A program made the translations under genes and the position numbers. Below, piece by piece: positions 1 through 28,087 of a DNA stretch of 64,000 nt. This DNA comes from Pocillopora damicornis (taxonomy: Eukaryota): contig NW_020843934.1 of the NCBI RefSeq assembly GCF_003704095.1, positions 124,001 through 188,000 of the forward strand. Reading direction: 5' to 3'. Each line of letters opens with the position of its first letter. Position 1 is the first letter of the stretch. The notes beneath the pieces are model-generated. The model had not been told where the DNA came from. It searched no databases and worked only from the letters and a program-made list of their open reading frames with translations.

Positions 1-3000
1 TTGTCCAAAATTCGATCCGTCGTATCTCCTACTCGTTAGGTAATAAAACCAGTGTTTGACAAAGCATCTTTTTCATCGACGCGATCCAGGAAAATTGGGT
101 TTAGCGCGTACAAGCACAACTAGAGGCATGCATTCAGATAATTGCGTATTTCAATTGAGTGTCGTGAACACAAAGAAAAAGAAAAAAAAAGTAGCTACAA
201 TGACCAATCAGATCAAAGGAAATTTTTATGGGAGCCAATGAGAAATCAAAGCTAAGTTTTCTGGACCAATCACAAAGCGAAGAAAGCAAAACCAATTGCA
301 ATCGCACACTGCCTTCGGCGCTCAATTGAAAATTGCATTTTATTCTTTGTTTACCGAATACATGTTAAGAATGAGTTCATTTACGAACGCTTACTGTACG
401 TCGTTTAAAAGACGAATAAACGCTTTTGGTCATGTAAATTAGTCAATAAAAAAGATGTAGTAAAGTCCAACTGTATTGCATAGTCTGAATATATAAAATA
501 AATTCGGCGAGTATAAAACACATCGAGGAACGATATGAGCGTAGGGATATCGATTTTTATCTAGAAATGAAGCGTTTGAAAGTGAATTTAAATTTCCTCG
601 AGAGAGGAATTTGGCGAGAAGACGAGGACAGGCAAGTTTATAGGTTATTTTCAAATGTCTGCGGAATTCAGAAAATCTTCAGTTGAAAGACAGAGGATGG
701 GAATAGTCGTGTTTTTAAAGTCAGATGTTGACAAACTTTGACTCCCACATGTCGGGAATTCTGGCCAGCAGACAAAAACGTGTACGTAAGAAGTTTGGAT
801 TTCTTCATAATCCTATCAACAACACCACACTAATAATAAAAAAAACATAAGCTTAAAGTATTTCAGTGCCTAAACCCAAAAACCTTCAAGCCCTAAAAAT
901 TTCTTGAAATAGCAATGCTAATGTTCACTGATGGTGTGCCCCATCTGTTGAGCCTTGGAAGAAATCGTACTCATTCCGATAGTTTAGCGTTTTTCCAAAC
1001 CTCTGATTCACACCAAATCAGCTTCTTGAGCTTTTCGACAAAGAGAAAAGCTGTGCCAAAGTCAGAGGGCTTAGTGTTTACCCAAAATTTATCCGCTGTT
1101 TAGCAAAACCGAGTCATAATTCAATTTAAACTTATATTTACTACCAATCGTTTGCGTTAACAAGACTAGTTTACAATTAAATTATGCGGCAGACACTCCA
1201 TTCTAGACTAAACACAGTTGGGTGACACTATTTGCATGCTTCTGATGACACCCAATACCAAACTATTTGTTGTGTCTTTTAGAGTTTCCTTTTATAAAAT
1301 AAAGTAAACAAATTAAGTAAGCCGGAGGGCAATTCAAGATCACTGTTGGCCCAAAAATCGTGTTACCTTTCCAATGGAATCTCAAAACTTGACACCAACT
1401 TTGAAGATACGATTAGAGACGGTCATTTGGAGCCATCTTCAACGATACAGATGGACAAAAAGTCGAAAATTGAGGAATTGGGAGATATAAAAACATTTTT
1501 AGTTTCTTGTGATGAAATATTTCATCTTACAAGCTTAGAAGTACTGACCCACACTTTCGGAGCTTAACATGGAACGACTAGGAGCGTTCAAGGAAGTGAT
1601 TTGTCTTACAAGGAGCGTGGGAAAAAGAAAAAAATTGAGTTCCCAGGAAAGATGGAACCCCAAACCTTTGGGGTTCCATGATGCTCATGTGGCATGGAGG
1701 ATGGAATCCGAGGGTCTGGGGTCCGATTTCTCGTGAGCACTCGGGATTTTTCCTTTGTCATACGCTCGTTACGAGACAAATAACATCTTTCTTCATTCCA
1801 CTACCGAGATCAAAATGTTCCATTGTTCTTAACCCATTAACCTTCAAGAGTGACAAGCATCGTATTTTTCCAAACAATATCTCCACACATTGAGATCACG
1901 AGAAAAATGGAAATTATGCAAACTAAATAAGCCCTTGTTTTTTTAAACAAATTCTCCTCGTCAGCACGTTAAGAAATGTATAGAGAACAGTATGGAGAAT
2001 ATACATACTGATGTTATTGCATTAGGGGTTAATCTATTGCCTAGAAGTATTGCGGCTATTTCTGAATGTGATGCTATTGTCTTCCTCATGAAACACCCTC
2101 GTGAAGTTTTCCAGACACTGAACTAGTTCTTAGTTGTATTCCTGGATGGAGAGGGACTCATGGAAAGCTACCGTAAATCCATGAATAAGCGCCCCTCCTG
2201 TAGCCCAAAAAAGTGCGTCCTCTCTTCGAATGAGCGCCACCCTCCTTTCCCTTTTTATAGACAAATGATCACGTTCGTCAGTCTAGTTGAGCGTGTAATT
2301 GCAATATTGGAAATGCAAATGTATACAATACTTCTTTCAGTTTGCAAACACGCCGGTTTTGGAAAATAGTAGAGTCCCAACTGTGCCGCCGTATAATTAA
2401 GTAAGTATAACCAGATAATTCAAGATGATGTAAATTGCCACCATAAAGAGTTTCTGGAGAGTTTCAAGATGTTTTNNNNNNNNNNNNNNNNNNNNNNNNN
2501 NNNNNNNNNNNNNNNNNNNNNCCCCCCCCCCTTCTGAACTCAAATTCGAAATAAGCACCCTTAGCGCTAATTCAAGGATTTACGGTAAGACTTGTCCAGT
2601 AAATAAAAGGTAAAGAGTGCTATTAAAAATACAAGAAAACTTTGAAATCATAGTTTAAATGATAGACATGCAGCATCAATCACCAAACATGGTCAATAGT
2701 CAAGACAATTAACGAGGGTTGCAAAAAGCGTCAATCTCAGAGATAAATTCAAGTTTCTTAAAAACTTTGAGATTGTAGTTCACCTTCACCAAAATAAGCA
2801 GAATTGGGTCACTCAAGGTTGTCCTCAAGGTTGCTTAACAACTTACTTGCAGAGCTGACACTGTGTAAATGTTTGCATGGCGGCCGCCTAACTGTGTGTC
2901 AACACCTACCGGGACAGGAAATACGTGAAAAAAAAACACGTCTTTTCAGTCACCCAGTATCTTTACGGAATTCGAACGTGCAACTTCACCGATTTTTTTA

Positions 3001-3161
3001 GAACATGAGCAGCACTAATCATCCAGTTTGACAGTTTAAGTAATTTGATCGCATTACGTCACATGCAGACGTGATTTCACGATGTTCCTACGACTATATG
3101 AAGCAGTACCTCTCAGCTCCTCGAAGCAATTCTAAGGTCCAGTTTTCCACACCAGATCAGT

Positions 3162-5873
3162 ATGCACTCGACTATTCATCGCGTCATTTTATTCTTGTGC
3201 GCCGCTTTACTTTGTACAGCAGGCCCCATTGAAAAAGAAGACACTGCAGTCTTTCTGAGACATCCACAAGAACAGTTTTGCTCAGCTGATTTTGGTAAGT
3301 CAAGATGTTTCATAGAAAAAAAAGTTGTCGAATACATGTAAAAAAATAGTTCGTGGCTTGTAGACGAGGCCTTTTGTTTGGGCCGAGGAACTCATCAAAT
3401 ACCTTTCAGAATTTTCAAGTGAATCCGTTGGGCACCGTGCTCAAAGTCTCGAAATGGTAATAGTATGGCTATCTACCACAGACGAACTCCAAACCGCACG
3501 TTCCCGAGTTAAATTTATATACACACAGAGAAAAAGAATTGTTGAAATAAACAAGTATCTGTAAATGATTTGATAGCGAAACAACGCACAAAGGGTTCTC
3601 CGTCTTAACGAAGTAACGTTGCGATCTTTCAAGGCCAACTTTATTTTTACAACAGGGAAATTTGCCTATAAACAAAATGAAGCTTTGATATAACACTGTT
3701 TTAGGCTATAAAAATACAAAACAGATAAGACCAAATCTGTTAAGGATGGCAAAGATTACAAGGATTGTAAATGATGACTTTGAAAAGATGCACAATTCTT
3801 TTAAATTTCTTTCTTGATGAATCCTAGTTTGCCCGAGCAATGGGAGTTCGTCAGAAGGGTCAATTTAGTTCACACAATAATTGAGCATGATCTCTCATGT
3901 AATCTAAAGCGGATACACGACGAATACGTGATTTTTGAAAAAAGTGTTAAGCGGAGCGTATATTTTCTCGGAAGTATCGCCCTTAAACGTTGCGTATTTT
4001 GTTAAGAAACAATATTTAAGATATGCATTTGGAAATTATTATTTACAATTGATGGAAGTAAAATTATTTGTACTCGTTGGAGGCCGGAAACAGTTTTTTA
4101 CGACTTTAATTTCTGTAATCTTTCGTGACTTGTGCATGGGGGGAAGGAACTTCACAGTACAATAGAAGGTTCGCCCAAAATGACGTCAAAACTAAACCCA
4201 GAACAAAAGCTATGAGCCAGACGTTGAGCGCAAATGTGGAGTAAGCATACATTTAGCAGCATATCTTAATCACAACTGTACAATTAGCATTTTTCTTTTA
4301 ACCCTTTAACTCCTAAGAGTGACTAACATCTAATTTCTCCTTTCAATATTTTGCTCTTGTATCAAACCGTTGAGAAACGTTGATCATTTAACGCTTGATG
4401 TCCCTTTCAGCAGGACTGACGTCTTTAAGAATTCTTTTTTTTGTTCGAATCTGTCGCCTGTGGAATAAACTACCCCTTAGTTTAAGGGAGTCAAATACCT
4501 TGTCGATCGTTCGTAAGAATTTGATGGCCTTTTATCATGATAAATTAAACGTAGATTTTTTTAGATTTTACACTGTACTTTACTAAATCATTAGTCCACT
4601 TATAATAATTTTATTGATTAGCCTTCATGTCGCATGTCTTTTATAACTGACTTGTTACACTAACGACTTTTTAGATAATTTTATTACTTAATTAATTCTG
4701 TAGATGTAATAATAAGTGGCCTATTTTTAAGGAGTCTTGTATTCTGTTTTAAGCCTACCTCAGATTTGTCATTTTACTTGTAAATCAGAAACTTGATTAA
4801 ATATCACCCCTGAATCACACAGTAAGGAAACAAAAACACAGGAAATGATCACCAACTAAACAGGCTCTTGAGTGTTACACAAATTTTCTCTGTCAGCACC
4901 TTAGGAAATGTATAGAGAACAGTACTGAGGATATGCATGCTATTGTTAGGATGTAAAGGATGTTCGGAAACTTCACGGTTTATCAGTAAAGTTGCGCATA
5001 GATTTTAAGATTCTTCTTATCACATCTAAAATACTTCAAAGCTTAGTTCCAAACTATCGTGAGAATTTAATTTCTATCTTGCCTGTTTCACATTATCAAT
5101 TTCGTCGCAATAATAATGGCACATTGCTTGAATCTCCACGATTCATAACGGAAAAGACTATGGGGGACCGATCATTTACAGTATTGGGAAGTTCTCTCGG
5201 GTAATCCCCAAGGAAGTTTCCGTTGGGTGCGATCAGAGAGTTCTGCAGTAGACAAACGAAGGAAAACGCACAAAGTTTCTATGAGAACAATATGAAGTGT
5301 CAATGAGAACTGAAAGACATTCTTTGCTTTGCAGCGGTCCGAGCCGAGGTCTTGCCGAAGAACCAGTCAAGAGAAGAGAACCACAAACAAAGTATATTCG
5401 AACACGATCTTAAAATTTATCAAATTTACAAAGGACAGGAGAAATTCCCGGACATCACCATCAACATCACTGCAGATAATGGTTCTTTCGTAAAAGCCTA
5501 CAGTGTTCACGTTGGGTTTCGAAGCAGCACTGAGTATTTCCTCGCTGGAAGTATCAAGAAAGGGGAAATTCTGCTGAATCAGCGTAGCTGGATTCAACCG
5601 TGGAAAGAAGTTACTAGCGAACAGCGTGAGGGAATTGAGAGATTTTACGGTCGAAACTGCGAATGCCATATTACACCGGCTTGCTTTGGAGCAATTGACT
5701 GCGTTCAGCCCTTGAAAGGATGCCAGGTCTCCCACGATTATCACACAATGCAACAATTCTACCAGGGCTGCGAATGGCGTTACTCTTACTGTATGAAAAA
5801 CAGGGAGGCAACCGCATGCTCATGGCAAGAAACCGCTGAGTATAGAAACTGCAGAGACAAAGTTTTACCTTGA
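3162..5873 (+). CDS. TIMP: TIMP-like secreted protein A (NTR/TIMP fold), 2 exons, lacks the N-terminal C-X-C; about 223 aa
   Basis: Exon 1 at 3162-3294 reads MHSTIHRVILFLCAALLCTAGPIEKEDTAVFLRHPQEQFCSADF, then G|gtaagt. Exon 2 at 5335-5873 follows a gcag acceptor and reads AVRAEV...IYKG...WIQPW...FYGRNCEC...SYC...ACSW...C. The phase-1 join is in frame. HPQxxFC, VRA, YKG and the C-terminal Cys pattern are TIMP hallmarks. Confidence 0.9.
4350..4799 (+). mobile_element. LINE (CR1/L2-like) 3' fragment inserted into a TTAA MITE, with an AATAT target-site duplication
   Basis: Encodes FFVRICRLWNKLPLSLRESNTL, typical of the LINE ORF2 C-terminus. The MITE halves at 4298-4349 and 4800-4958 rejoin seamlessly, with aatat on both sides. 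Confidence 0.65.
4960..5200 (+). mobile_element. LINE (CR1/L2-like) ORF2 C-terminal remnant
   Basis: RIDFKILLIT.K...L.P.Y...L...P......GDRSF motif. Confidence 0.7.
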
Positions 5874-7224
5874 AACTGACAGCAAATTAAAGATTAAAAA
5901 AAGGTAATTGAGGAACCATCAAAGGTTTCTCGTTGAAAAAGTATAAATATTATCTAACATATGGCCGTCTTGAATCAATATGACTTTTTTTCCACCTACA
6001 AAGAATGTTAATCATATGCAGCTTTGCTGATGTTAGCTGTGAGCAAATAATAAATGAAAATGCTGATATTAATAGTAAACACACCAGTAGCTTTCTCGCT
6101 CAACACACGAAATGCCTGACAACTGAATAAATTCAAAATTCTACGCAGAAAGTGCGGATTTCATTTAAAAAAAAAAAGCGGGGACAGGAGTTGATTTTTC
6201 TCTACCGTGTGTGGTAACCTGGTAAACTCTTCCAGAATTCTCCCCAGATGCCTAAAAACATTTTGACCTTGGTTTATTTACGATTACGCTCGTATTACTC
6301 AAAGGCCGCCCCGAGAATTTTCCAGCATTTCCATCAACATTATGATCAAGTTTTCTAGAAACCCAAAACAGTTTCGAACAGTTATGCACCCGGTTTTGTT
6401 TTCATTGCAGTCTGGAGTAAATTACGCTGTTTGTTTAGAGTTATATCCGTCTAGACTTTTAATAGTTCATGGTTCAATATTGCGGTCTCACATTTGGAAG
6501 ATAAGATTTTAATGAGTTCTTCCTACATCATGATGCACGGTCGATGGTCTGGCAAAAGGCATGAAAATTTTCATTTTAATCGATCATAAATTCGTTCCGT
6601 TATTAAAAATCGGAATTTGAGACCGTTCATTGGTAGTGTCGACAAGAATTGATCCTCGTTATCGGATTTCTCACGCAATATGGCAGATATTCTAATTTTA
6701 AGCTATAAATCCCTTTATTGAAGGATCAGTTTTCAAAAGAATATATATCAAGGATTGAAAAGCCGGAAAATCGTCTTAAAACCATCTATTTTGAAATAGT
6801 ATTGGAATTGCTATTTTTATTGCTACTTTACCGAGATCTGGTCAAGAGTTTGTTGACATTTGGGTGACTGTCGTCAGCAAAGAAGCATTGAAATCAGCAC
6901 AATTGAATTCACATGTTGTACTAAGGCTATTTTCTCCTTTAATGGTATTGACAAAAATTCGCACTCATTTTATTCTTTCCTACATTAAAATTGAAATAAA
7001 TGGACTAATGGGCGTTTTTCTCCCAGTCATCGACGCGGCACACGGCTTTGCGGCGTGGCGCCAAGTACAACATGCTCCAATTTCAGCCAAAAAAATTATG
7101 GCTTCATGCTGGTTCAACTTGCTATATAAGTGGCAAGACAATTTTCAGACGCAGTAATTGGTCATTCAGGCCTCGGAGTGTCAGCAGGAGTTTGCGTTCC
7201 TCGATTGAGAAATTAGAAAGAGAC

Positions 7225-7339
7225 ATGTCTCATCTCTTTTATATCGTTTTGCTACTTGGTGCAGTGAACACAGTTGATGCGTTACCATGTTCTTGCCCCG
7301 AGAGACATCCACAAGAGGTTTTTTGTAGTGCACATTTTG
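7225..7339 (+). CDS. TIMP: TIMP B exon 1 (signal peptide + LPCSCPERHPQEVFCSAHF); probable partner is the exon 2 assembled at 18027-18565 on the minus strand
   Basis: ATG at 7225 opens MSHLFYIVLLLGAVNTVDALPCSCPERHPQEVFCSAHF, followed by G|gtaagt (phase 1). A TATATAA box lies at about 7123. The downstream intron sequence links, through its duplicated copies (10513-11950 and 9992-10390, matching 18837-19045), to the 18565 acceptor. Confidence 0.85.
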
Positions 7340-7790
7340 GTAAGTAAAGCCCTTATTCTTGAAATGTTTTGAGAACTCGGACATTTTACGAGAGTGATGA
7401 TTGTTCCTCCTAACTAGTTGAGACTAATAGGATTTAAGGTTTTGATCATCTTGATTGTTCTATGGTTTTCTGGACTCTTCGTGGTCTCTACCTTGGTTTT
7501 CATTCGGTTTTATTGACTTGCTTTTCTTCCTCCTGGGTTAACTGTTTCTCCTCTTTTTGAATTTATCTTGGTAACGGTTTTCAGTTTTGTCCAGTTGTTT
7601 TTAGTCTTCGTCGAGTCTTTCTATTCAGATGAAAATTTCTATGAGAAACTCTTATGTCCCACGTATAAACTTGATTATCTTGAAAAGTCAATGGTCGAGT
7701 TTTGTTAAAACTGCAGTGCTGCGGAGCCCTTTTTTTGCGCCGATTCCCAAGCCTTTCTTCCTCACGGGAGTCCAGACAGCTAAAGTCAAC

Positions 7791-10700
7791 CTATTTTCGG
7801 GGGCGACTTCTTCGAGCGGTTGACTCATCAAATTCAAAGTAACGAAAAAAAAGGTACTATTATTGGAAATCTTGAGAATCTTTTGGTAAACCTGTCTCGA
7901 CTTTAAAAAACGTTTTGTTTTGTTTTTTTATTTTTTTTGCATAGAGAACTGGTAAGACCGTTAGTTCGAAACAAAAATCCTTGGAAAAACGATTTCAAAC
8001 TTCTTTTATGTACCGCGACCACAAAACTTAAAAAGCCAAGAGCAGTCCTGTAGTTACCCAACTGATTCTTAAAAACCAGGAGCCTTAACATACGAACTGC
8101 TTTAGTTTCGAAGTACAACAAAAAAAAACCCCGACAAGGGTTTACGTCATGTCTGGGTTTAAGGGTAAAAACGACATTTTCAAAGACTTATTTCGCAGGC
8201 CATATCTGTTTTATTTTGTAACTAGTGTATACGACCATCTGTACTTCTTGCAGCTACATGCACACTTGAAAGAATCCAATAACTTCAGTTTTTAAAAGAA
8301 ATGATGAAACCTCTAAAGTTATTTTTCAGTTTACGTTATGAAGGTAATAACCTGGGGTGTGTTAGAGCAAATTTTAATCAGTAAGTCTTTACAAGTCGAA
8401 AGCACTCGTCATCGATGAAGCTCTTACTTGGCAGAATGACTGCCTTATTTGAACTTTTTCCAAGACTTTTCTTGAGCTTATTAAAGCACGCCCTTTAAAT
8501 CAATGATATTGTATCCAACAGCGAAATCGGAACTTTTTCTAGGATTTCAATCTTCAAAAGGGACTAATATTTTTTGTTAACCCCAAGCTCGCCACAAAAC
8601 AAGCCTTCTGCATGTTTTCGACGGAATACCCAATTTCACCTCAAGCTGCATTCGCTTTCAACGTGCAAACTGGTGAATTTTAACAGGAAGGTATTACCAA
8701 AACACTAAAAATCAAATGAATAATCACATTGAAACAACAAAAAAACTGTCAAAGATTCGTAAAAACTCTATTACAAACGGGGAATGAGGGCGAATTTTAA
8801 ATAAATGAGGTCATTGGCCACAACAGCCACCTTCTTTAAGCTTCAGGTTTGGAAACCAAATCAAATCCTTTCCTGTTCACACTTACTTGAGAAAATATTT
8901 GCAGGGCTTTTCCAAACAAAGTTAATTTATCGTTTACTATCACATTATTTTTGGCCGGAAAGAGCATTTGTTTAATTAGTGAGGTTAGGTCACATGTTAT
9001 CCTTAGCAATTCTCTTAATTTCCTCCGTATTAATGTACTCTTAAAAATTCCTGAAGGCATAAATCAACAGAAATTCCACCCAGACAACAAAAGTTGATTT
9101 AAGAGCATTGGAGCAAAGTTTTTAATATTGGAATGTCGAAAGTATTCCGGATTAAATCGGAAAAAATAAATGTCTATGCTCCGTTATTCGAAAAGGAAAC
9201 TCGNNNNNNNNNNNNNNNNNNNNNNNNNNNNNNNNNNNNNNNNNNNNNNNNNNNNNNNNNNNNNNNNNNNNNNNNNNNNNNNNNNNNNNNNNNNNNNNNN
9301 NNNAAGAGCATGCGGTTTTCTCAGCATTTTGAATGCAGTAGGAATGACCCCATTCGCAGCTGTTGTGATCGATTCCAGAAGGCTTACCACACCCCTTTAG
9401 CTTCGGCTTCTTGTCACAAAACACAGTGTAACACGGCGAGATCTGACAGGCGCAGTTTCCTCGGTAAAACCGCCNNNNNNNNNNNNNNNNNNNNNNNNNN
9501 NNNNNNNNNNNNNNNNNNNNNNNNNNNNNNNNNNNNNNNNNNNNNNNNNNNNNNNNNNNNNNNNNNNNNNNNNNNNNNNNNNNNNNNNNNNNNNNNNNNN
9601 NNNNNNNNNNNNNNNNNNNNNNNNNNNNNNNNNNNNNNNNNNNNNNNNNNNNNNNNNNNNNNNNNNNNNNNNNNNNNNNNNNNNNNNNNNNNNNNNNNNN
9701 NNNNNNNNNNNNNNNNNNNNNNNNNNNNNNNNNNNNNNNNNNNNNNNNNNNNNNNNNNNNNNNNNNNNNNNNNNNNNNNNNNNNNNNNNNNNNNNNNNNN
9801 NNNNNNNNNNNNNNNNNNNNNNNNNNNNNNNNNNNNNNNNNNNNNNNNNNNNNNNNNNNNNNNNNNNNNNNNNNNNNNNNNNNNNNNNNNNNNNNNNNNN
9901 NNNNNNNNNNNNNNNNNNNNNNNNNNNNNNNNNNNNNNNNNNNNNNNNNNNNNNNNNNNNNNNNNNNNNNNNNNNNNNNNNNNNNNNNNNNCCTTCGCGG
10001 CCACCCTTTGGATTGTCACGCAAGGTTTCCTACATAAGAAGCGTTACTTCCCAAGAAAGCGTTGAGCAACATCGCCAGGGATGACTGAGATTTATTGAGT
10101 TCCAGGTTTAAAATAAGACGTATTCAAGCACTTGTTGAGCAACATTGTACATTAACTGGAACAAAAGAAACTGTTTACCTATGAAAAGGGTTCAAATCCC
10201 ACAGACACCGACTTGGCCACCGTGATGAGCGGAAGGGCGGGTGGGCATTAGTCAAACGGCGCGCGCGGTTGTCCAATAAACGCTGACCCCACCATTTTAT
10301 TTTCGCACACTCGCTTTTCCGACTAAGAGTCTTACGCAGTGTACTTCAAACGAAAGAAAGTAACCACAGCTGCCAATCAGAACAAGGTAAAAATGTTACG
10401 AAGAGCCAATCAGAACTCACAGTTAAAACAAGCAAACTGCAGCAGCCCAAAGCGCGGGAAAACGTGAATGACCAATCGCAGTGTTGTAGTGTCGCGTTTG
10501 ATGGGGAGGCACCGAGTTTCCTTTTCGAATAACGCCGGGAGCATAGACACATATTTTTTCCGATTTATTCCGGAATACTTTCGACATTCCATTTTTAAAA
10601 ACTTTGCTCCAATGCTTAAATCAACTTTTGTTGTCTGGGTGAAATTTCTGTTGATTGATACCTTCAGGAATTTTTAAGATTACATTAATACGGAGGAAAT

Positions 10701-11950
10701 TAAGAGAATTGCTAAGGATAACATGTGACCTAACCTCACTAATTAAACAAATGCTCTTTCCGGCCAAAAATTGAATTGGAGTCCCATCGTGATAATAAGC
10801 GATAAATTAACTTTGTTTGGAAAAGCCCTGCAAATATTTTTTTAAGTAAGTGTGAACAGGAAAGGATTTGATTTGGTTTCCAAACCTGAAGCTTAAAGAA
10901 AGTGGCTTTTGTGGCCAATGACCTCATTTATTAAAAATTCGCCCTGAGTCCTCGTTTGTACGAACGTTTTTAAGAATCTTTGACAGTTTCTTGTTGTTTC
11001 AATGTGGTAAATTCATTTGATTTTTTGTGTTTTGGGGATGGATACCTTCCTGTTAAAATTCACCAGTTTGCACGTTGAAAGCGACTGCAGCTTGGGGTGA
11101 AATTGGGTATACCGTCGAAAATATGCAGAAGGCTTGTTTTGTCGCGAGCTTGGGGTTAACAGAAATATTAGTCCCCTTTTGAAGATTGAAATCCTTAAAA
11201 AAAGTTCCGATTTCGCTGTTGGATACAATATCATTGATTTAAAGGGCGTTCTTTAATAAGCTCAAGAGAGGTCTTGGAATAAGTTCAAATAAGGCAGTCA
11301 TTCTGCCAAGTAAGAGCTTCATCGATGACGAGTGCTTTCGACTTGTAAAGACTTATTGATTAAAATTTGCTCTAACACACTCCAGGTTATTATCTTCATA
11401 ACTGAACGTAAAATGAAAAATAACTTTAGAGGTTTCATCATTTCTTTTAAAAACTGAAGTTATTGGATTGTTTCAAGTGTGCATGTAGCTGCAAGAAGTA
11501 CAGATGGTCATATACACTAGTTACAAAATAAAACAGATATGGCGTGCGAAATAAGTCTTTGAAAATGTCGTTTTTACCCTTAAACACAGACATGACGTAA
11601 ACCCTTGTCGTGTTTTTTTTTGTTGTACTTCGAAACTAAAGCAGTTCGTATGTTGAGGCACCTGGTTTTTAAGAATCAGTTGGGTAATTACAGGATTGCT
11701 CTTGGGTTTTTAAGTTTTGTGGTCGCGGTACATAAAAGAAGTTTGATATCGTTTTACCAAGGATTTTTGTTTCGAACTAGCAGTCTTACCAGTTCTCTGT
11801 GCAAAAAACAAAACAAAACAAAACAAAACGTTTTTTAAAGTCGAGACAGGTTTACCAAAAGATTCTCAAGATTTCCAATAATAGTATATTTTTTTTTTCG
11901 TTACTTTGAATTTGATGAGTCAATCGTTCGAAGAAGTCGCCCCGAAAATA
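7791..11950. repeat. About 1.4-kb near-identical inverted segment pair (7791-9203 vs 10513-11950)
   Basis: For example gggcgacttcttcgagcggttgactcatc (7801) is the reverse complement of the sequence ending at about 11943. The match is continuous with scattered SNPs and indels. Confidence 0.9.
9304..9474 (-). other. Small contig between two gaps, duplicating part of the TIMP exon 2 at 18077-18247
   Basis: The sequence appears identical to 18077-18247 and is flanked by N runs on both sides. Confidence 0.8.
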
Positions 11951-12826
11951 ACTCATCTTTAAATAGAGATGGATAATGTATGGATATTATCAGGAGATAA
12001 TTTTACAATATTTTAAAAGACTTAGGACTAATTCAATTATTTAAAATCAGAAAAACCTTTGAGCATGAATTTGCGATGTATCATTCACGCGTCGAACTAA
12101 CTTCTACATTGCACATATAAAATGGCAACTGTCATCGAGTATTGATGAAACATGTTAAAAATAAACCTAAATTGGTCTCATAGTTAACAAATACTACGTT
12201 CGTTAATTCTAGTTGGTTGTTCTTCTGAGAAAATTCGCTTTTTTGTCATGAAAACTGGAAGGGAAACATGATTGTTAATTTTGTCTTTCCCTATTGTCGT
12301 CGAAACTGCTTGTAAACAAGTATTCATTGTGTTTTTAAATCTTTGACTTTGAAAGCATATCTTCTCTCATTTTTATGGGTGATCAGTGCTCAAATTTTTC
12401 TCTAAAATTATATATATATGTCTATTGTTAGAAAATAAAAAAATTATCAACACCTAGTTTTTAGGAACAATTAAAAGAGAAAAATACTGTTTTATGTTAG
12501 AAATACAGCCTGCGGATCAAACGATCTAATTACAAAGGTAGTAATCTTCGCGGAAGACTCGAAATCATTAACCCTTTAACTCCCAGAAGTGATAAACAAG
12601 ATATTTCTCTTGATAATATCCACACATTATCCAGCAAACAAGTGATGAGAACACTAAGACTTATTAGGTTGAAGTTGTTAAGATGATCTAGCACCAAAAT
12701 CTCATAACTAATTTCCAAGCAGCTGGAAGGGAGAAGTAACAATCAGATCTTGGGAGATAAAGGTCAGGGCAAATTTTTATGTTCTATGTTTCGTTGCACG
12801 TGCTCTCTATTTAAAGATGAGCTATT
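11947..12826. mobile_element. Putative non-autonomous DNA transposon (about 880 bp) with 23-bp terminal inverted repeats
   Basis: aataactcatctttaaatagaga (11947-11969) matches tctctatttaaagatgagctatt (12804-12826) as reverse complement at 22/23 positions. A TTAA-type MITE sits inside at about 12568-12762. Confidence 0.6.
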
Positions 12827-12872
12827 AGTCTCGAGGTCGTTATCTTTTTTCGCACAATTTTGAGTAGTCTAA

Positions 12873-15619
12873 CTAGGGCCGGGGGTTAGCCATGCACTCC
12901 TTGTACTTTGGTGTTTCGTACCAGGAGCACGCGGTCCCTTTGGAGTTTTTCACACAATAGGAGTGGTCCCACTCACAAGGGTTCCTGTAAGGAGACAGAT
13001 AGTTTGAAGCACATCCTTTGAGCTTTCCGCAGTCTCTGCCGTGACACGGTGCAAGCTGACAATCACAGTTTTGCCCATAGAAGCGCTTGATACCAACACG
13101 TACAGCCTGGCGCTTGAGGACTTGGGACCAATCTTGTACAAAATTGCATAAGCTCACCCAAAGTTTACCGTTGGCAAACCACCCGAAGATGACGTACCTT
13201 TTGCCGTTCTGAATCCCGATAAGACCACACCTCGTGGCACTACTTTTGAAAGTGTAGACCTTGGCAAAAAGACTTCCCTGGTTGGACCCATAAGACCGAA
13301 CTCCCTCGGTTTTGTTTAGTGCTGTCGCTCCCTTGTAAGTCTTCAGGATTCGCATACCGATTATTTTTTTGTGCCCCTCTACTTCTTGGGACAAAATCTT
13401 CGCACGTATCACTGAAAACGAAACAAGAATTAGGTTCATCTTATCTTCTTTTCACCGAATGAACACAATTACTTCCAGTCAAAATAGAAATAATGATTAT
13501 TAGGATATTAGAAGTATTTTATATAAAACAGTTTCAGTAAACTATCTTTAAGGACAATTCTAAACACGAAAAACAAATTCATCCAAAGATATGTTTAATA
13601 AGAAAAGTCTTCATCTGTAATGGTTAGCGACTAACATTCCGCTGTATCATAAGGGGGCTGGGTGAAACTGGGTCAGTATATGAGAATGCAACATGTTCAG
13701 GAGTCTTTCGATCTGCCTTGGCAAACTAGTAATAAGAATTCGGAAACTTGAGAGAAAAAAAATCAAATCACGAAATTCTTTAAACGAAAATGTGCACCAG
13801 CCAAAAAGGAGAATCGCTTATGAGATCTTGGTAGTGCAAATGTCTCTGTTCGTATCAGTGTGTTGTTAGGAGCTTGAATAGGTGAACATGACCAGAAACC
13901 AGGATTAATAATGTAGTTCAGAAGAACGTGCCTTGCGGCAAATGGAAATGATTCCTTTAGCTCTTGTTCTACTAACTGGATATTTAAAAGTTGAACTATA
14001 AGGATCAGTGTTTCTCGTGATTTGACCTTGACATGAGAAATTTAGGTCTCGCAAAAAATTCCACCTCAACCTTCGCAATGACCAACACAAAGAGTCTAAC
14101 CTCTAAAACTATTTCCGTTCTCAGTGGAGGCTATCGCAGCTAAACTTGAAGTACCTTTACAGAAGTTGCCAGCACTGGAGGAAGCCTCACAAAACGCTAG
14201 ATTAGAAACGTTATTTTGTCCCAAGAACAAACCAATAGTTCAAATTATGCGGGTAATATCAGCGTTTAAATCGAAGCGAAAAATGGTGACTGCGTGAAAC
14301 AGAGCAAAACGAAGAATCGGAGCTATTTCTAAGGCGGGAACATAGCACGCACGTTTTTACAGCCATATCTGACCACACTATCGGTGCTTTTGTAAAAACA
14401 TAAAAGTTCCCTCTGCGCAGCACGCGAGCTACGTACCCGGTGAAGATAATGATTGATAAAGTGGAGATCAAAGCAACCCGCAAAGCCAGCTAAAACAACA
14501 CCAATATTCGGTTCATATTTCAATAGGAAATTGAGTGATTTTTCCTTGTTTGGTTTTCTCCTTTCCTGCGGAGTAATTCAAGTTCTTCACAAGATTCTTT
14601 CTCTCGGTCTCTGAACCGATCAATTACAATGATGCTTGTACGGACTGCTGTGTGAGCGCTCCGATCTGAGCTTCAATTTACTCAAGGATGCTACTCTTTC
14701 TAAAATGCGAGTACTTATTCGTGATATTGTGACATCAACGGAAGGATTATGTGCTTTGTTCATAAGTGGATAATTATTTTGAACAATCTACAAAGCCCAA
14801 AAAGCAAACAGAAAGGACGTTAGAGGTTGTTTGTGCAAACAAATGGGCTGTTTGTTTTATCTTGAGATGAAAGCACACATCTTCGACAGGAAGTGTCGAT
14901 GATACATAGAAGAAATGTTGAAACGCCAATTAACAATTGGTTCATGTTTTAGCGTGCGCTATCGAGTTATGGAGCACGTGGGAAGTTTGGAGAGCACGAA
15001 AGAAGCGTGAGACTTGCCCGAGGCAATAGCCGAGGGCAACTCTAGCTTCTTGAGTAACGGTTTTCAGTTTCATCCAGTTGTTTTTAGTTTTAATCGAGTC
15101 TTCCTATTCCGATGAAAATTTCTATGAGAAACTCTTATGTCCCACGTATAAACTTGATTATCTTGAAAAGTCAATGGTCGAGTTTTGCTAATTTATAGCG
15201 TTTTTTCGCAGTATATATACCGGTGAAGAATGCAAAAGAAATACAACTGTTTCATGCCAACTCGAAAGTCGAAAAGTTGACCCGCTAAATGAACTCGGTG
15301 GACGATTAGATTCTGCATAAAACTCTGCCCAAATAAAACATACTCTTCAAGGACGCCCTTAAAACAGTTCTTTTACTACTAGGAAGTCAATATTTTGTTT
15401 GAGAAGTGCACCATGTGTGCGCGAGCAAGAAAAAGCGAGGGCGCCGTGAGTTTTACCATGGAATTTCAAACACCTTTGTCTTACAGTCTAGTGAATGATT
15501 CGCAACTTACCAAATCCCGCATTACAGAAGGCTTCCTGGGGATGTTGCGGCCTACAAGTACAGGCCTGGCTTAAAGCCACGAGACCTAGGAACAAAGCAG
15601 CATGAACGATAAAGGACAT
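12873..15619 (-). CDS. TIMP: TIMP C, canonical two-exon TIMP (mature N-terminus CTCRPQHPQEAFC); about 215 aa, 14 mature Cys
   Basis: Exon 1 at 15619-15511 reads MSFIVHAALFLGLVALSQA|CTCRPQHPQEAFCNAGF, then G|gtaag. Exon 2 at 13411-12873 follows ttttcag and reads VIRAKIL...TYKG...TRCG...SLCNFVQDW...NCDC...ACSW...KEC. A TATATAA box lies at about 15724-15730 (minus strand). Confidence 0.92.
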
Positions 15620-16156
15620 TCTCTCCTTGTGTCGTTGTTGTACACTTCAACTCTCTACTTTGCCTCGCTTGTTGAGGATTAAAAAGAGTGATTCGTGTAT
15701 CTGATAGCTGGCTCAGTTTCTGCTTATATACTGACATCATCAGCGCGTGTCAAAGGTGATATCCCGCAGAGCCAGGTGCAGCGGACGAAAGCTCCGTGCC
15801 ATGCGTCACTGAAACGTGTAAGCAAGCAGAAATATGTGTTACGAAACCGTATTTCCTCTGAAAGTGTGAACTCGGAGGATTCTGGGAAGGGGATCACACG
15901 GTTTTCGGGGGGGGAGGGGGGGCGGCGGTGGGAGGAGGTAAGTCGTCGCCAACAGAATACAAAGAGGGTGCTATAGAAATTGACTGAAAATCTTCCGAGC
16001 CCCCCCCCCCCTACACAGGTGATAAATAATGACCTGTCTACCGGTCCCTTAGTAAGACTTTTCTTTTGGCCTTCGGTAAGAACGGTAAGAAGTCTGGAGG
16101 AAAAGTTGGAAGAGAGTTACACCGAAGTAAAGAAGAGAAGAAAATTGTTATGAAAG

Positions 16157-16709
16157 GACAGTGAGCATACAGTTTGACTGTTTGGATCAGAGCGACAGAA
16201 GAATATTAGGAACAGTGATAAAAATGGTGAGAAGTCTTGTGGGAAAGGGACAGTGAGCATACAGTTTGACTGTTTGGATCAGAGTGACAGAAGAATATTA
16301 GGAACAGGGATAAAAATGGTGAGAAGTCTAGTGGGAAAGAGACAGTGAGCATACAGTTTGACTGTTTGGATCAGAGCGACGGAAGAATATTAGGAACAGT
16401 GATAAAAATAGTAAGAAGTCTAGTGGGAAAGGGACAGTGAGCATACAGTTTGACTGTTTGGATCAGAGCGACGGAAGAATATTAGGAACAGGGATAAAAA
16501 TGGTGAGAAGTCTAGTGGGAAAGGGACAGTGAGCATACAGTTTGACTGTTTGGATCAGAGTGACGGAAGAATATTAGGAACAGGGATAAAAATAGTAAGA
16601 AGTCTAGTGGAAAAGGGACAGTGAGCATACAGTTTGACTGTTTGGATCAGAGCGACAGAAGAATATTAGGAACAGGGATAAAAATGGTAAGAAGTCTAGT
16701 GGGAAAGGG
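16157..16709 (+). repeat. Minisatellite, 6 copies of a 92-bp unit
   Basis: gtgagcatacagtttgactgtttggatcagag recurs at 16161, 16253, 16345, 16437, 16529 and 16621. Confidence 0.95.
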
Positions 16710-16804
16710 AAATAGTTGGAGCAGAGTTACACGGAAGTTAAAGAGAAGAGGAACATTTTTTAGACCAGAGGAGGATGGAAGTAGAAGTAGAACAAATTCA
16801 GTAG

Positions 16805-17330
16805 GAACAGTGGAAGATTGGAATAGTAAAATACTGGAATAGTGGAAGATTGGAATAGTAAAATATTGGAAAAGTGGAAGATTGGAATNNNNNNNNNNNN
16901 NNNNNNNNNNNNNNNNNNNNNNNNNNNNNNNNNNNNNNNNNNNNNNNNNNNNNNNNNNNNNNNNNNNNNNNNNNNNNNNNNNNNNNNNNNNNNNNNNNNN
17001 NNNNNNNNNNNNNNNNNNNNNNNNNNNNNNNNNNNNNNNNNNNNNNNNNNNNNNNNNNNNNNNNNNNNNNNNNNNNNNNNNNNNNNNNNNNAGTGGAAGA
17101 TTGGAATAGTGCAAGATTGGAATAGTTAAATATTGGAATAGTGGATGATTGGAATAGTAAAATATTGGAATAGTGGAAGATTGGAATAGCAAAATATTGG
17201 AATAGTGGAAGATGGGAATAGTGGAAGATTGGAATAGTAAAAGATTGGAATAGTGGAAGATTGGAATAGTAGAACACTGGAATAGTGGAAGATTGGAATA
17301 GTAGAACACTGGAATAGTGGAACAGTGAAA
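16805..17330 (+). repeat. Purine-rich satellite built from 8-bp units (TGGAATAG / TGGAAGAT / TAAAATAT), spanning a gap; shorter inverted copy at about 20065-20190
   Basis: The 8-bp units are directly visible. Confidence 0.9.
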
Positions 17331-18026
17331 CAAAGGAACAGAGGAACATGAGAATAGGGCAAGAGAAGAACAGAGGAACATGATAAGGTATAAAAAGAGC
17401 TCGGACGAAATGAACAGAGGATTAAAAGTATACAAGGACAATAGAAAACGAGGAACGGTTAAACTGAGAGGAAAAATAGGAACAAATATACAAAGGAACA
17501 GAGGAATACACGGACAAAAGAACGGATGGAAAGAGAAACGTAGAAACATAAAGACAGAAGGAGGACCAGAGGATAAACCCTCACCTCTTCATAGTATCAG
17601 TAAGAGACGAAGTGGCTTAATGCTCATTGCACTGGACTCCGGGTCGAGAGGTTTCGGGTCGAGAGGTCCCGGGTCGAGAGGTCCTGGTTCGAGACCTGGC
17701 AGGTCAACGTGTAGGCTCCAGTAAAGACCTTACCTGGACCTCTCTTCATAGTATCAGTTCCTGCCTTGGCCGTGGTTTTCACGTTGGCAGTTATTGGTTT
17801 GGAAAACATTTTTGGGAGAACTTTTTCAATCAGATTTCCTTTAAAAATGTTTGGTTTAATCTTGGCAAAAATTTGCCATTCATGATACAAAGATCGAGAA
17901 AAACTTCATTAGGTTAATGAAAATATCTATCAGCCATACTCGGCATTTTGTGCGTTATTTTTTTTTCTAAAAGTCTAAAACTAACGTTGTAGTTTTTTTG
18001 CAAATAGTATGTTCTTTGTTCAGTTC

Positions 18027-18565
18027 CTATGGTTTCACTTTGGTGATGCAGCTCTTGTAGTGACTGGTTTTACGCCAAGAGCATGCGGTTTTCTCAGCAT
18101 TTTGAATGCAGTAGGAATGACCCCATTCGCAGCTGTTGTGATCGATTCCAGAAGGCTTACCACACCCCTTTAGCTTCGGCTTCTTGTCACAAAACACAGT
18201 GTAACACGGCGAGATCTGACAGGCGCAGTTTCCTCGGTAAAACCGCCGTACCCCAAGACGCTGGCGCACAGTGATTTGAGGCCATTCTTGGTTCCAGTGA
18301 CACTGATTGAGCTCTAGCTTTCTTTTCCTGACCTGGCCTGAGATGAGGTACACTTTGTTGTTATTCAGTTTGACCCCGCACAGGCTATCAAGAGTAAAGG
18401 TGTAAGCTTTGGCAAAAAGGCTTCGCTGTCTCGAGCCGTAAACATTGACGCTGTCCATCTCATGGAGTCGGTGTTCTCCTTTATATGTTTTCAGGATGCG
18501 GAGGTCGAAGATACGAGTAAAATTGTCGAGGTATTCCTCTTGAAACAAAACCTTTGCTCGGATAA
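18027..18565 (-). CDS. TIMP: TIMP exon 2 (type B/D); no exon 1 is assembled on the same strand
   Basis: After a tctag acceptor it reads (V)IRAKVLFQ...TYKG...DSLCGV...NQCHW...NCAC...SYC...ACSW...KSC. Phase 1 is compatible with exon 1 at 7225-7339. Confidence 0.88.
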
Positions 18566-19146
18566 CTAGACATGGGAAGGAAAAATACAGATAGTAACAA
18601 TGTTTTCTAGTACACCGTAACTAGGAAACTATTTTTTTCATTGTAGCGCCATCTTTCTGTATATGAACCACACATAGCCCACAATTCCTCCACTCGCTTG
18701 GATGAAGGGCTTACGCTCGAAATGCTCGAATCCCAATACAAGTGATAAAATCAAATGATCTTGTAATAACCCCCGCAGACACAGCACCACAGTTTCTTTT
18801 TCTCTCTAGAAACAGTCAGTCTCCTTCGCGCTTTCGCCTTCGCAGCCACTCTTTGGATTGTCAGGCAAGGTTTACTACATAAGAAGCGTAGGGCGGGTGG
18901 GCATTAGACAAACGGCACGCGCGGTTGTCCCACAAACGCTGACCCCACCATTTTATTTTCGCACACTCGCTTTTTCGACCAAGAGTCTTACACAGTGTAC
19001 TTCAAACGAAAGAAAGTAACCACAGCTGCCAATCAGAACAAGGTAANNNNNNNNNNNNNNNNNNNNNNNNNNNNNNNNNNNNNNNNNNNNNNNNNNNNNN
19101 NNNNNNNNNNNNNNNNNNNNNNNNNNNNNNNNNNNNNNNNNNNNNN

Positions 19147-19249
19147 CGAATGGGGTCATTCCTACTGCATTCAAAATGCTGAGAAAACCGCATGCTCTTG
19201 ACGTAAAACCAGTCACTACAAGACCTGCATCACCAAAGTGAAACCATAG
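19147..19249 (+). pseudogene. TIMP: 3' end of a second copy of the B/D TIMP exon 2 with a premature stop (TGG to TGA)
   Basis: Reads EWGHSYCIQNAEKTACS*RKTSHYKTCITKVKP* with TGA at 19199-19201, where the 18027-18565 copy encodes Trp. The 5' part is hidden in the gap at 19046-19146. Confidence 0.7.
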
Positions 19250-20623
19250 GAACTGAACAAAGAACATGCAAAAAAAGACTAAAACGAAAGAGAGGGAGAG
19301 AGAGAAAAGAGTAAAACACTTTAATATTAGCCAATTCACTTCGTTAGTTTTAGACTTTTAGAAAAAAAAACACACACAGAATGCCGAGTATGGCTGATAG
19401 ATATTTTCATTAACCTAATGACGTTTTTCTCGATCTTTGTATCATGAATGGCAAATTTTTGCCAAGATTAAACCAAACGTTTTTAAAAGGAAATTTGATT
19501 GAAAAAGTCGTCCCAGAAGTGTTTTCTAAACCAATAACTGCCAACGTGAAAACCACGGCCAAGTCAGGAACTGATACTATGAAGAGAGGTAAGGTCCTTT
19601 TCGCCCACCCACCTCCCCTCGGCATTTCATCAGGCTTCCCTGAGAATTCAAGGTAGAGAGGTACTGTGAGATGAGAGTGTTTTGCCCAAGAACATAACGC
19701 TATGCCAGGTCTCGAACCAGGACCTCTCGACCCAGGACCTCTCGACCAGGAGTCCAGTGCAATGAGCATTAAGCCACTTCGTCTCTTACTGATACTATAA
19801 AGAGGTGAGGGTTTATCCTCTGGTCCTCCTTCTGTCTTTATGTTTCTACGTTTCTCTTTCCATCCGTTCTTTTGTCCGTGTATTCCTCTGTTCCTTTGTA
19901 TATTTGTTCCTATTTTTCCTCTCAGTTTAACCGTTCCTCGTTTTCTATTGTCCTTGTATACTTTTAATCCTCTGTTCATTTCGTCCGAGCTCTTTTTATA
20001 CCTTATCATGTTCCTCTGTTCTTCTCTTGCCCTATTCTCGTGTTCCTCTGTTCCTTTGTTTCACTGTTCCACTATTCCAGTGTTCTACTATTCCAATCTT
20101 CCACTATTCCAATATTTTACTATTCCAATCTTCCACTATTCCAATCTTCCACTATTCCAATATTTTACTATTCCAATCTTCCACTGTTCCTACTGAATTT
20201 GTTCTACTTCTAATTCCATACTCCTCTGGTCTAAAAAAATCCTCCGAGTCCCCTCAAGCGTTAAAAAAATGGCCCCTGACGTTTCATCACAAAACATGCA
20301 CGGCAGATGACATGACAGGAATGTGCCAGTTAACTTCATGTTTTATAAAGGAAGTGAGAAATAGGACGCTTATTTCACACTTTAAGAGGAAATACGGTTT
20401 CGTAACACATATTTCTGCTGCTTACGCGTTTCAGCGACGCATGGCACGGAGCTTTCGTCAGCTGCACCCGGCTCTGCGGGATATCACATTTGACACGCGC
20501 TGATGATGTCAGTATATAAGCTGCAACTGAACCAGCTATCAGATACAGCAATCACTCTTTTTAATCCTCAACAAGCGAGGCAAAGTAGAGAGTTGAAGTG
20601 TACAACAACGACACAAGGAGAGA

Positions 20624-20732
20624 ATGTCCTTTATCGTTCACGCTGCTTTGTTCCTGGGTTTCGTGGCTTTAAGCCAGGCCTGCAGTTGTATGCCGCAACA
20701 TCCCCAGGAAGCCTTCTGCAATGCGGGATTTG
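20624..20732 (+). CDS. TIMP: TIMP C' exon 1 (second copy or allele; mature N-terminus CSCMPQHPQEAFC); exon 2 not assembled, probably lost at the gap 21642-21741
   Basis: MSFIVHAALFLGFVALSQA|CSCMPQHPQEAFCNAGF, then G|gtaag. It differs from 15619-15511 at 7 of 109 nt. A TATATAA box lies at about 20513. Confidence 0.85.
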
Positions 20733-27662: not shown

Positions 27663-28087
27663 AAATTTCATTTCAAAAAAAAAAAAGTGGTCATCATTTA
27701 GTTCTTTAAGTTGTAAACACACAGAGAGCGACGAATAGATCATGTATTGGATCTAAATTAGAACTAAGCTTTTGTAAATAGTCTATAAGTCAGGCTTATT
27801 GTTACGGTTATTAACCAAATAGGAACAGACTCGACAAGAAATTGTTGCTTTACAGTATTAAGACAAACCCCTTCTAGGAGGGGATTTCAATCGCTGCAAT
27901 AAAACTGTACTCAGTTTGAAAGTTTATGCTATTGTTTTAACTTATTAAAATAACGAAGAACTTTTGATGCACAACTACCAAACCACTCCATGTCGCCAAG
28001 ATAAATTTCTTGTAAAACATTTACATAACATTTGATACTAAAAACTACTTTATCCCACCATGAACAAATTTAAGAAGTATCACTCAC

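Follow-up and report, generated by a model that had tools for sequence, protein, structure and literature searches.

Structure and transcription of TIMP A

TIMP A is a two-exon gene in a 64,000-nucleotide stretch of the Pocillopora damicornis genome (contig NW_020843934.1, positions 124,001 to 188,000; hereafter the window), and its product is related to the tissue inhibitors of metalloproteinases (TIMPs). It belongs to a cluster of at least five TIMP genes, found on both strands, that are nested in one ~39.7-kb intron of a minus-strand synapsin gene (window 1-28186; G000:C569:110959-153111). The further TIMP genes of the window are interrupted at the same point, with first exons in which Cys-X-Cys immediately precedes an HPQ..FC motif and second exons that encode both a loop cysteine and the Cys99 equivalent, whereas TIMP A has neither Cys-X-Cys nor these partner cysteines. 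It defines a conserved, expressed TIMP subfamily that lacks the inhibitory ridge. A job other than classical protease inhibition is probable, because selection has preserved TIMP A in stony corals from a time before the two main branches of these corals separated.

All TIMP A coordinates refer to the forward strand. The coding part of exon 1 (3162-3294), delimited by its translation and by the spliced RNA contigs X1, X2, and X5, encodes in order a signal peptide, an N-terminal segment without Cys-X-Cys, and the HPQ..FC motif, which contains C40. The signal peptide is inferred to span residues 1-20, with cleavage after Ala20, by the -3/-1 rule only. A phase-1 intron (3295-5334) opens with GT at 3295-6 and closes with AG at 5333-4. 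Exon 2 (coding part 5335-5873) supplies the rest of the N-domain and the whole C-domain, and ends in a TGA stop codon. The joined frame comprises 672 nt, or 223 residues, and exon 2 is open throughout, in line with the intact splice sites and frame described in an earlier note made from the letters of the window alone. The 5' untranslated region extends at least over 3112-3161 (RNA contig X2, record 8). The 3' untranslated region covers 5874-6315, ending at 6120 in X1, at 6152 in the unspliced contig X6, and at 6315 in X2, a single run; two runs reach at least 6120, and an AATAAA hexamer lies at 6126-6131.

Transcription was checked by placing Logan contigs of polyA RNA-seq runs on positions 2900-6400; such contigs give neither an expression level nor true transcript ends. 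A single 1165-nt contig (X2) matches 3112-3293 and then 5334-6315, and an 869-nt contig (X1) joins 3212-3293 to 5334-6120 with zero mismatches. A contig from a third study (X5), whose run is presumed to be RNA, joins 3153-3293 to 5334-5875. The junction from 3293/4 to 5334/5 is thus present in three RNA runs of three studies, which indicates that TIMP A is transcribed and spliced as modelled, without an upstream exon. These data bear directly on the possibility that the gene model is wrong and that the true first exon carries Cys-X-Cys. Nothing was found in favor of this reading, and it was rejected as having almost no chance of being correct: X2 runs without a break from 3112 past the ATG as far as the splice donor, full-length transcripts of Stylophora-type, Porites-type, and other corals start alike, and a motif scan of the window, the intron, and the upstream flank found no second HPQ..FC exon near TIMP A.

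The intron is silent in the RNA contigs apart from two short high-copy repeat pieces. Each of the four RNA runs shows word depths in the thousands for both pieces (4290-4350 and 4800-4950), which occur next to many different flanks and are fragments of a high-copy transposable element or miniature inverted-repeat transposable element family transcribed elsewhere. Just upstream of exon 2, the intron of P. meandrina is ~600 bp longer (window 5182-5185 versus L015:12024-12630). Four database open reading frames (P0001, P0003, P0004, and P0005) start within the intron and run beyond the TGA, wrongly suggesting proteins of 210-286 residues. Their C-terminal extensions resembled the loss of a stop codon, but are an artefact of a gene caller that read TGA as Trp.

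Loss of the ridge and retention of the fold

The contact ridge of canonical TIMPs is built from the N-terminal peptide (Cys1 to Pro5) and the C-D loop (Met66 to Cys70), which the Cys1-Cys70 disulfide links, and Cys1 binds the catalytic zinc through its free amino group and its carbonyl (PMC3679795). TIMP A lacks the Cys-X-Cys start, both partner cysteines, and the full C-D loop. An ungapped comparison with a neighbouring first exon (7234-7341) places T28 and V30 opposite Cys-Ser-Cys. A phmmer alignment with human TIMP-1 chains (E 5.6e-12) pairs residue 33 with TIMP-1 residue 6, and T28 therefore corresponds to Cys1 and V30 to Cys3 (T28-A29-V30 codons, 3243-3251). After the inferred signal cleavage, about seven residues would stand before the old position 1, leaving TIMP A without a cysteine as residue 1.

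The same phmmer register equates C40 with TIMP-1 Cys13 and R128 with TIMP-1 Cys99. The C-D connector (K98 to V104, 5493-5513) is 6-7 residues shorter, and the Cys70 equivalent has gone with it: a 21-residue stretch with SLCG in the paralogue at 18569-18030 corresponds to 15 residues without a cysteine in TIMP A. The NQC of this paralogue reads NQR, with R128 in place of the Cys99 equivalent (R128-S129, 5583-5588). Most orthologues have Gly at this position, and the adjacent S129 is invariant in the ridge-less clade described below and absent from canonical relatives. These comparisons bear out what the earlier note had read from the window, namely that Cys1 and Cys3 and both of their exon-2 partners are gone, that the SxCG loop is deleted with a shortening of six residues, and that NQC has become NQR.

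The remainder of the protein is well preserved. TIMP A retains 10 mature cysteines, an even number, made up of C40 and nine from C153 onward, and the earlier note had counted the same ten. Eight of them (C153, C155, C161, C174, C190, C197, C206, and C217) show no variation across an alignment of 31 sequences, and C167 is retained in at least 88% of the clade and in 80% of canonical rows. The equivalents of Cys13 and Cys124 and all C-domain cysteines are kept, and would be expected to pair in five disulfides.

The three sequons named in the earlier note are likewise in place. N54-Q-S (5361-5369) has its Asn conserved in 92% of the clade, and one of six aligned canonical relatives has Asn there. 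N88-I-T and N93-G-S (5463-5486) are matched by nearby sequons that recur in the clade without being strictly positional. A C-domain stretch (5727-5768) holds V176 (96% of the clade), F186 and Y187 (both invariant), and G189 (96%), none of which occurs in any of the six aligned canonical relatives. Taken together, the N54 sequon, Gly/Arg128, Ser129, T158, V176, F186, Y187, and G189 are conserved in 88-100% of the clade and are rare or absent in canonical relatives.

Family, database, fold, and structure analyses used either exon 2 or a natural full-length orthologue (P0002, 97% identical over exon 2), and the joined two-exon model served for translation, local tblastn, and codon alignments. Exon 2 alone matches the Pfam TIMP family (PF00965) at 74.6 bits against a cut-off of 23.1 (E 1.1e-20), spanning profile positions 22-183 of 183, and the best sequence matches of TIMP A are human TIMP-1 and TIMP-2. 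At E 0.01 or better, exon 2 does not match the NTR family (PF01759), for which the full-length P. meandrina orthologue has a faint, precomputed hit.

The structure prediction that the earlier note had proposed yields a confident N-domain and a weak C-domain. The AlphaFold model of P0002 has a mean predicted local distance difference test score (pLDDT) of 64 with a 31-sequence alignment and of 61 with 17 sequences. The predicted barrel (approximately residues 34-148) reaches pLDDT 85-90 in its strands, and residues 1-32 fall below 50. Foldseek places TIMP-1, TIMP-2, and N-TIMP-3 first (E ~1e-8; N-TIMP-3 at a root-mean-square deviation of 1.9 Å over 119 columns), followed by other NTR barrels, namely PCPE-1, complement C345C, agrin NtA, meteorin, and AceES-2. 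In the predicted structure, TIMP A keeps the TIMP fold, its N-domain is a confident TIMP/NTR barrel, and the old wedge segment is predicted to be unanchored.

Age and selection of the ridge-less clade

Relatives were collected by word-based protein searches that took first exon 2 and later two distant matches as queries. Of the roughly thirty 90%-identity clusters found, one (P0021) is canonical and the others lack the loop cysteine and the Cys99 equivalent; every full-length match among the latter also lacks Cys-X-Cys. Orthologues from named corals occur in P. meandrina (as an unnamed protein), in Stylophora pistillata (XP_022786627.1, 'metalloproteinase inhibitor 4-like'), in Oculina patagonica, and in Porites lobata, P. 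evermanni, P. harrisoni, and P. lutea ('metalloproteinase inhibitor 3-like'). Further orthologues with the identical four losses were found in many other corals. The four losses and the loop deletion are common to all 25 of the 25 aligned clade members, and both exon-2 partner cysteines are kept in six of six aligned canonical relatives.

Several orthologues lie on ~1-kb contigs that hold the entire spliced reading frame and are therefore transcripts; one example is L012, which has the junction as modelled. The genomic position of the gene is also conserved. A metagenome contig carries a 51%-identical orthologue in the same place between canonical TIMPs, with its own first exon that lacks Cys-X-Cys. 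TIMP A holds its position in P. meandrina too, the nearest named relative, which has 97-98% DNA identity over the first 9.2 kb of the window.

After the addition of more orthologues, 21 'disarmed' sequences form one clade with support of 100/99. Its sister group comprises two canonical gene types from the TIMP A cluster (98/96), and a third canonical type falls outside. Three rows were left out of this tree: the partial P0016, the long gene at window 27090, and a long gene on contig C2287. In a first tree that included them, support for the clade was just 65/86, because the two long rows attached to it; without the three rows it rose to 100/100. Within the clade, the sequences of Porites, a genus of 'complex' corals, form one subclade, and other subclades hold those of the 'robust' genera Pocillopora, Stylophora, and Oculina; the duplication and the four losses are therefore older than the complex/robust split. 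On this tree the four losses map to the stem of the clade. The earlier note had argued that a paired loss across two exons pointed to selection rather than decay, and the fixation of this state across an orthologue clade that includes Porites, Oculina, and Stylophora agrees with that argument.

Selection was measured as the ratio of nonsynonymous to synonymous divergence (dN/dS, or omega) by the Nei-Gojobori method with bootstrap intervals. Over the whole gene, the ratio is 0.26 (0.16-0.40) against a Stylophora-type transcript and 0.21 (0.11-0.32) against the 51%-identical orthologue. In the same two comparisons, the N-domain gives 0.33 and 0.23 and the C-domain 0.18 and ~0.06. For a distant pair, exon 2 of TIMP A has a ratio of 0.16, and over the same pair the second exons of two canonical neighbours have ratios of 0.15 and 0.05. 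As judged from these substitution rates, both TIMP A domains are constrained and the gene has been kept by purifying selection since the duplication. The frame is open in all recovered sequences apart from one allele, including those inspected from four clusters of 23-61 members.

Several observations pull in the other direction. Between P. damicornis-type and P. meandrina sequences, the whole-gene ratio is 0.5 with an interval of 0.16-1.8, and canonical neighbours give 0.06-0.14 over the same pair. The dN of this pair (0.015) is close to intron divergence (~0.016-0.027), so selection may have relaxed recently within the genus. The ratios for distant orthologues are themselves rough, because dS has reached saturation (1.7 or more). 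In a P. meandrina-type allele of one Tara Pacific metagenome sample, the frame of exon 2 is shifted by a 2-bp deletion (CA within ATCAACATCACTG). The deletion appears at L022:4188 and L023:578, corresponding to window 5468-5469, in two assemblies that are taken to represent the same sample, and suggests that loss of function may be tolerated, at least in heterozygotes. Lastly, the C-domain model is weak (pLDDT 44-65), as it was with the 17-sequence alignment, and this low confidence makes a surface location of the clade-specific residues tentative.

A rival reading takes TIMP A for a decaying or neutrally drifting duplicate whose frame is open by chance. The within-Pocillopora omega of 0.5, with its wide interval, and the frameshift allele speak for it. 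Against it, the frame is open in each sampled genus at dS above 1, the omega values of 0.2-0.3 have intervals that exclude 1, at least eight of the ten retained cysteines do not vary in the alignment, and TIMP A is transcribed and correctly spliced. Decay is accordingly a very improbable account, and a pseudogene was rejected at the level of the clade on the basis of dN/dS and conservation. The earlier note had favored selection for a folded TIMP without the ridge over decay, and expression, dN/dS of 0.2-0.3, the fixed clade, and the predicted fold all side with it; the locus is expressed, its dN/dS is well below 1 against other genera, and no upstream Cys-X-Cys exon accompanies it.

With both sides weighed, we put the probability at roughly 70% that TIMP A is a functional, transcribed gene encoding a secreted, probably N-glycosylated descendant of two-domain TIMPs with a dismantled reactive ridge, a protein that would act by binding rather than as a classical inhibitor. 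A tandem duplication of a canonical TIMP in the synapsin-intron cluster produced TIMP A before the two main stony-coral branches split. The protein has lost both ridge disulfides and part of the C-D loop and has a probably extended mature N-terminus, with the barrel, the Cys13-Cys124 equivalents, and the C-domain cysteines staying in place.

Possible functions and genomic context

Given the ridge losses and the extended N-terminus, TIMP A is most likely unable to wedge into a metalloproteinase active site, and residue-level comparison strongly suggests that canonical inhibition has been lost. The protein probably acts by binding something instead. The preferred, speculative possibility is a non-inhibitory ligand, adaptor, or decoy that would work through the C-domain, which is favored because the clade-specific residues V176, F186, Y187, and G189 lie in that domain. 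The clade-conserved positions tentatively suggest that the C-domain takes part in binding. A comparable case is that of human TIMPs, whose C-domains bind the hemopexin domains of pro-matrix metalloproteinases (pro-MMPs).

Alternatively, TIMP A may still be a protease inhibitor with another mode or target, acting on astacins, ADAMTS proteases, or other metzincins through a different surface or through a newly exposed, processed N-terminus. The conserved barrel and the conservation of many ridge-flanking residues are consistent with this idea, and the strong constraint on the N-domain (omega 0.23-0.33) indicates that the domain still matters. In addition, N-terminally modified N-TIMP-3 variants are reported to remain active on ADAM17 and ADAMTS-4/-5 (PMC3003256). 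However, those variants retain Cys1 and both ridge disulfides, whereas TIMP A is without all four cysteines and the loop, and its N-terminal segment is predicted to be unanchored. The NTR domain of PCPE-1 offers a relevant precedent, since a version cut to start at its N-terminal cysteine inhibits no MMP, BMP-1, or ADAMTS (PMC2871463). An altered inhibitor is considered unlikely.

A structural or regulatory part in the skeletal organic matrix, a role that the earlier note had suggested, appears less likely still. TIMP A is secreted and has several sequons, and TIMP-annotated genes, with the paralogue unspecified, are reported to be highly expressed in calicoblasts of a regenerating coral (PMC12019164). 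On the other hand, neither the Stylophora orthologue accession XP_022786627.1 nor any TIMP or metalloproteinase inhibitor term occurs in the searched portions of the text and supplements of the Peled 2020 skeletal proteome, so the suggestion gained no support from that source. A 2026 preprint on the skeletal proteome of a cold-water coral mentions no TIMP, and TIMP A lacks the acidic or repetitive composition of matrix-type proteins.

Binding without inhibition is known among proteins of the NTR fold. The PCPE-1 NTR leaves MMPs, BMP-1, and ADAMTS uninhibited and, together with heparin, enhances BMP-1 (PMC2871463), and hookworm AceES-2 shows no MMP inhibition. Like these two, agrin NtA and the meteorin NTR share an OB-type barrel with TIMP A and work by binding rather than by blocking a metalloproteinase. 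All four are distant or single-domain proteins, whereas TIMP A is a recent offshoot of two-domain TIMPs that has a C-domain. With canonical TIMPs (human TIMP-1, -2, and -3, and the neighbours at 18569-18030, 13412-12876, and 27090-27650), TIMP A shares the Pfam family, the two-domain fold, Cys13-Cys124, and the C-domain cysteines. It further shares with the coral neighbours two exons, a phase-1 intron after the FC..F motif, and nesting in the synapsin intron. It differs from canonical TIMPs in the missing Cys-X-Cys and partner cysteines, the connector shortened by 6-7 residues, the extended N-terminus, and the clade-only residues of the C-domain.

Cnidarian TIMP-domain proteins without the zinc-coordination motif have been reported before. 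Several TIMP homologues of Acropora, Anemonia, and Nematostella lack Cys-X-Cys (AmTIMPa, d, f, and g, AvTIMP, and Nematostella TIMPs), some of them also without signal peptides or C-domains, and Nicosia et al. left them out of their 2016 analysis (PMC4860685). TIMP A resembles these homologues and extends that report with a complete, RNA-supported model, the joint loss of the partner cysteines and the loop, and measures of orthology, age, and selection. 'Pseudo TIMPs' have also been described across Metazoa in a study of Pteria penguin, where they are defined by having no conserved NTR domain (PMC10755359). They are TIMP-related and non-canonical like TIMP A, which however keeps the domain and loses the ridge only. 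None of the papers searched mentions the orthologue accession numbers. Since cnidarian TIMPs without Cys-X-Cys (2016) and non-inhibitory NTR-fold proteins were already known, the finding is partly anticipated in the literature.

The result has practical consequences for annotation. TIMPs are usually read as protease inhibitors, and TIMP A orthologues in Porites, Stylophora, and Oculina are named 'metalloproteinase inhibitor 3-like' or '4-like'. A conserved and expressed copy that lacks the ridge is a warning against the inhibitor name in coral expression work on wound healing, calcification, or stress. It also provides a natural experiment on what the TIMP fold does independently of proteases; in mammals such roles are difficult to tell apart from inhibition.

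TIMP A is not the only ridge-less TIMP in this genome. Cys-X-Cys and both partner cysteines are also missing from two adjacent intact two-exon genes (G000:C2494:52086-53269 and 56130-57112; L017, L005, L020, and L007). The two share ~26% identity with TIMP A and are located outside the synapsin intron, beside a canonical TIMP (L008). In trees, the pair groups with the canonical TIMP of its own contig, apart from the TIMP A clade, and forcing the two ridge-less groups together costs 11.4 log-likelihood units, which is marginally rejected (approximately unbiased test, p-AU 0.049). The four-cysteine loss therefore probably happened twice, independently, which suggests that the ridge behaves as one evolutionary module.

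A more sweeping and doubtful proposal is that stony corals evolved 'pseudo-inhibitors' from canonical TIMPs at least twice independently. Such proteins would lack the whole wedge unit (both disulfides, the loop, and the free N-terminus) and might occupy non-catalytic sites, for instance pro-MMP hemopexin domains or cell-surface receptors, in competition with true TIMPs, thereby tuning metalloproteinase activation instead of blocking it. The copy nested in synapsin would have persisted from before the complex/robust split.

A third locus (G000:C2287:141169-143824; L018 and L006) holds a very divergent TIMP-like gene with a long exon-2 insert that lacks Cys-X-Cys and the loop cysteine. A cysteine persists in this gene at the place equivalent to Cys99, and it may represent an intermediate or differently rewired state.

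The synapsin exon that bounds the cluster lies at 28082-28186 on the minus strand and covers Synapsin_C profile positions 13-47. The synapsin exon that comes next is found before position 1 of the window, so that a single intron, falling between profile positions 47 and 66, encloses the entire TIMP cluster. The same nesting of TIMPs in synapsin was called in P. meandrina. It is regarded as an ancestral genomic hallmark and was shown for Nematostella with a single TIMP (Candiani 2010, PMC2825198); in contrast to that single gene, the intron here holds a multi-gene cluster, as in sea urchin.

Part of the cluster is rearranged relative to P. meandrina. Within a larger affected region (9204-21741), positions 12120-19046 are inverted and bounded by N gaps at 9204-9991 and 19047-19146. 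Partial duplicates of lower identity occur at 10234-11950 and 19722-21641. Two fragments of exon 2 are also present, one at 9472-9305 and one, containing a stop codon, at 19148-19246. The inversion and duplicates look like a mis-oriented contig combined with haplotype duplication in the scaffold, with a real inversion as the alternative. The rearranged region bears on TIMP B and on two copies of TIMP C exon 1.

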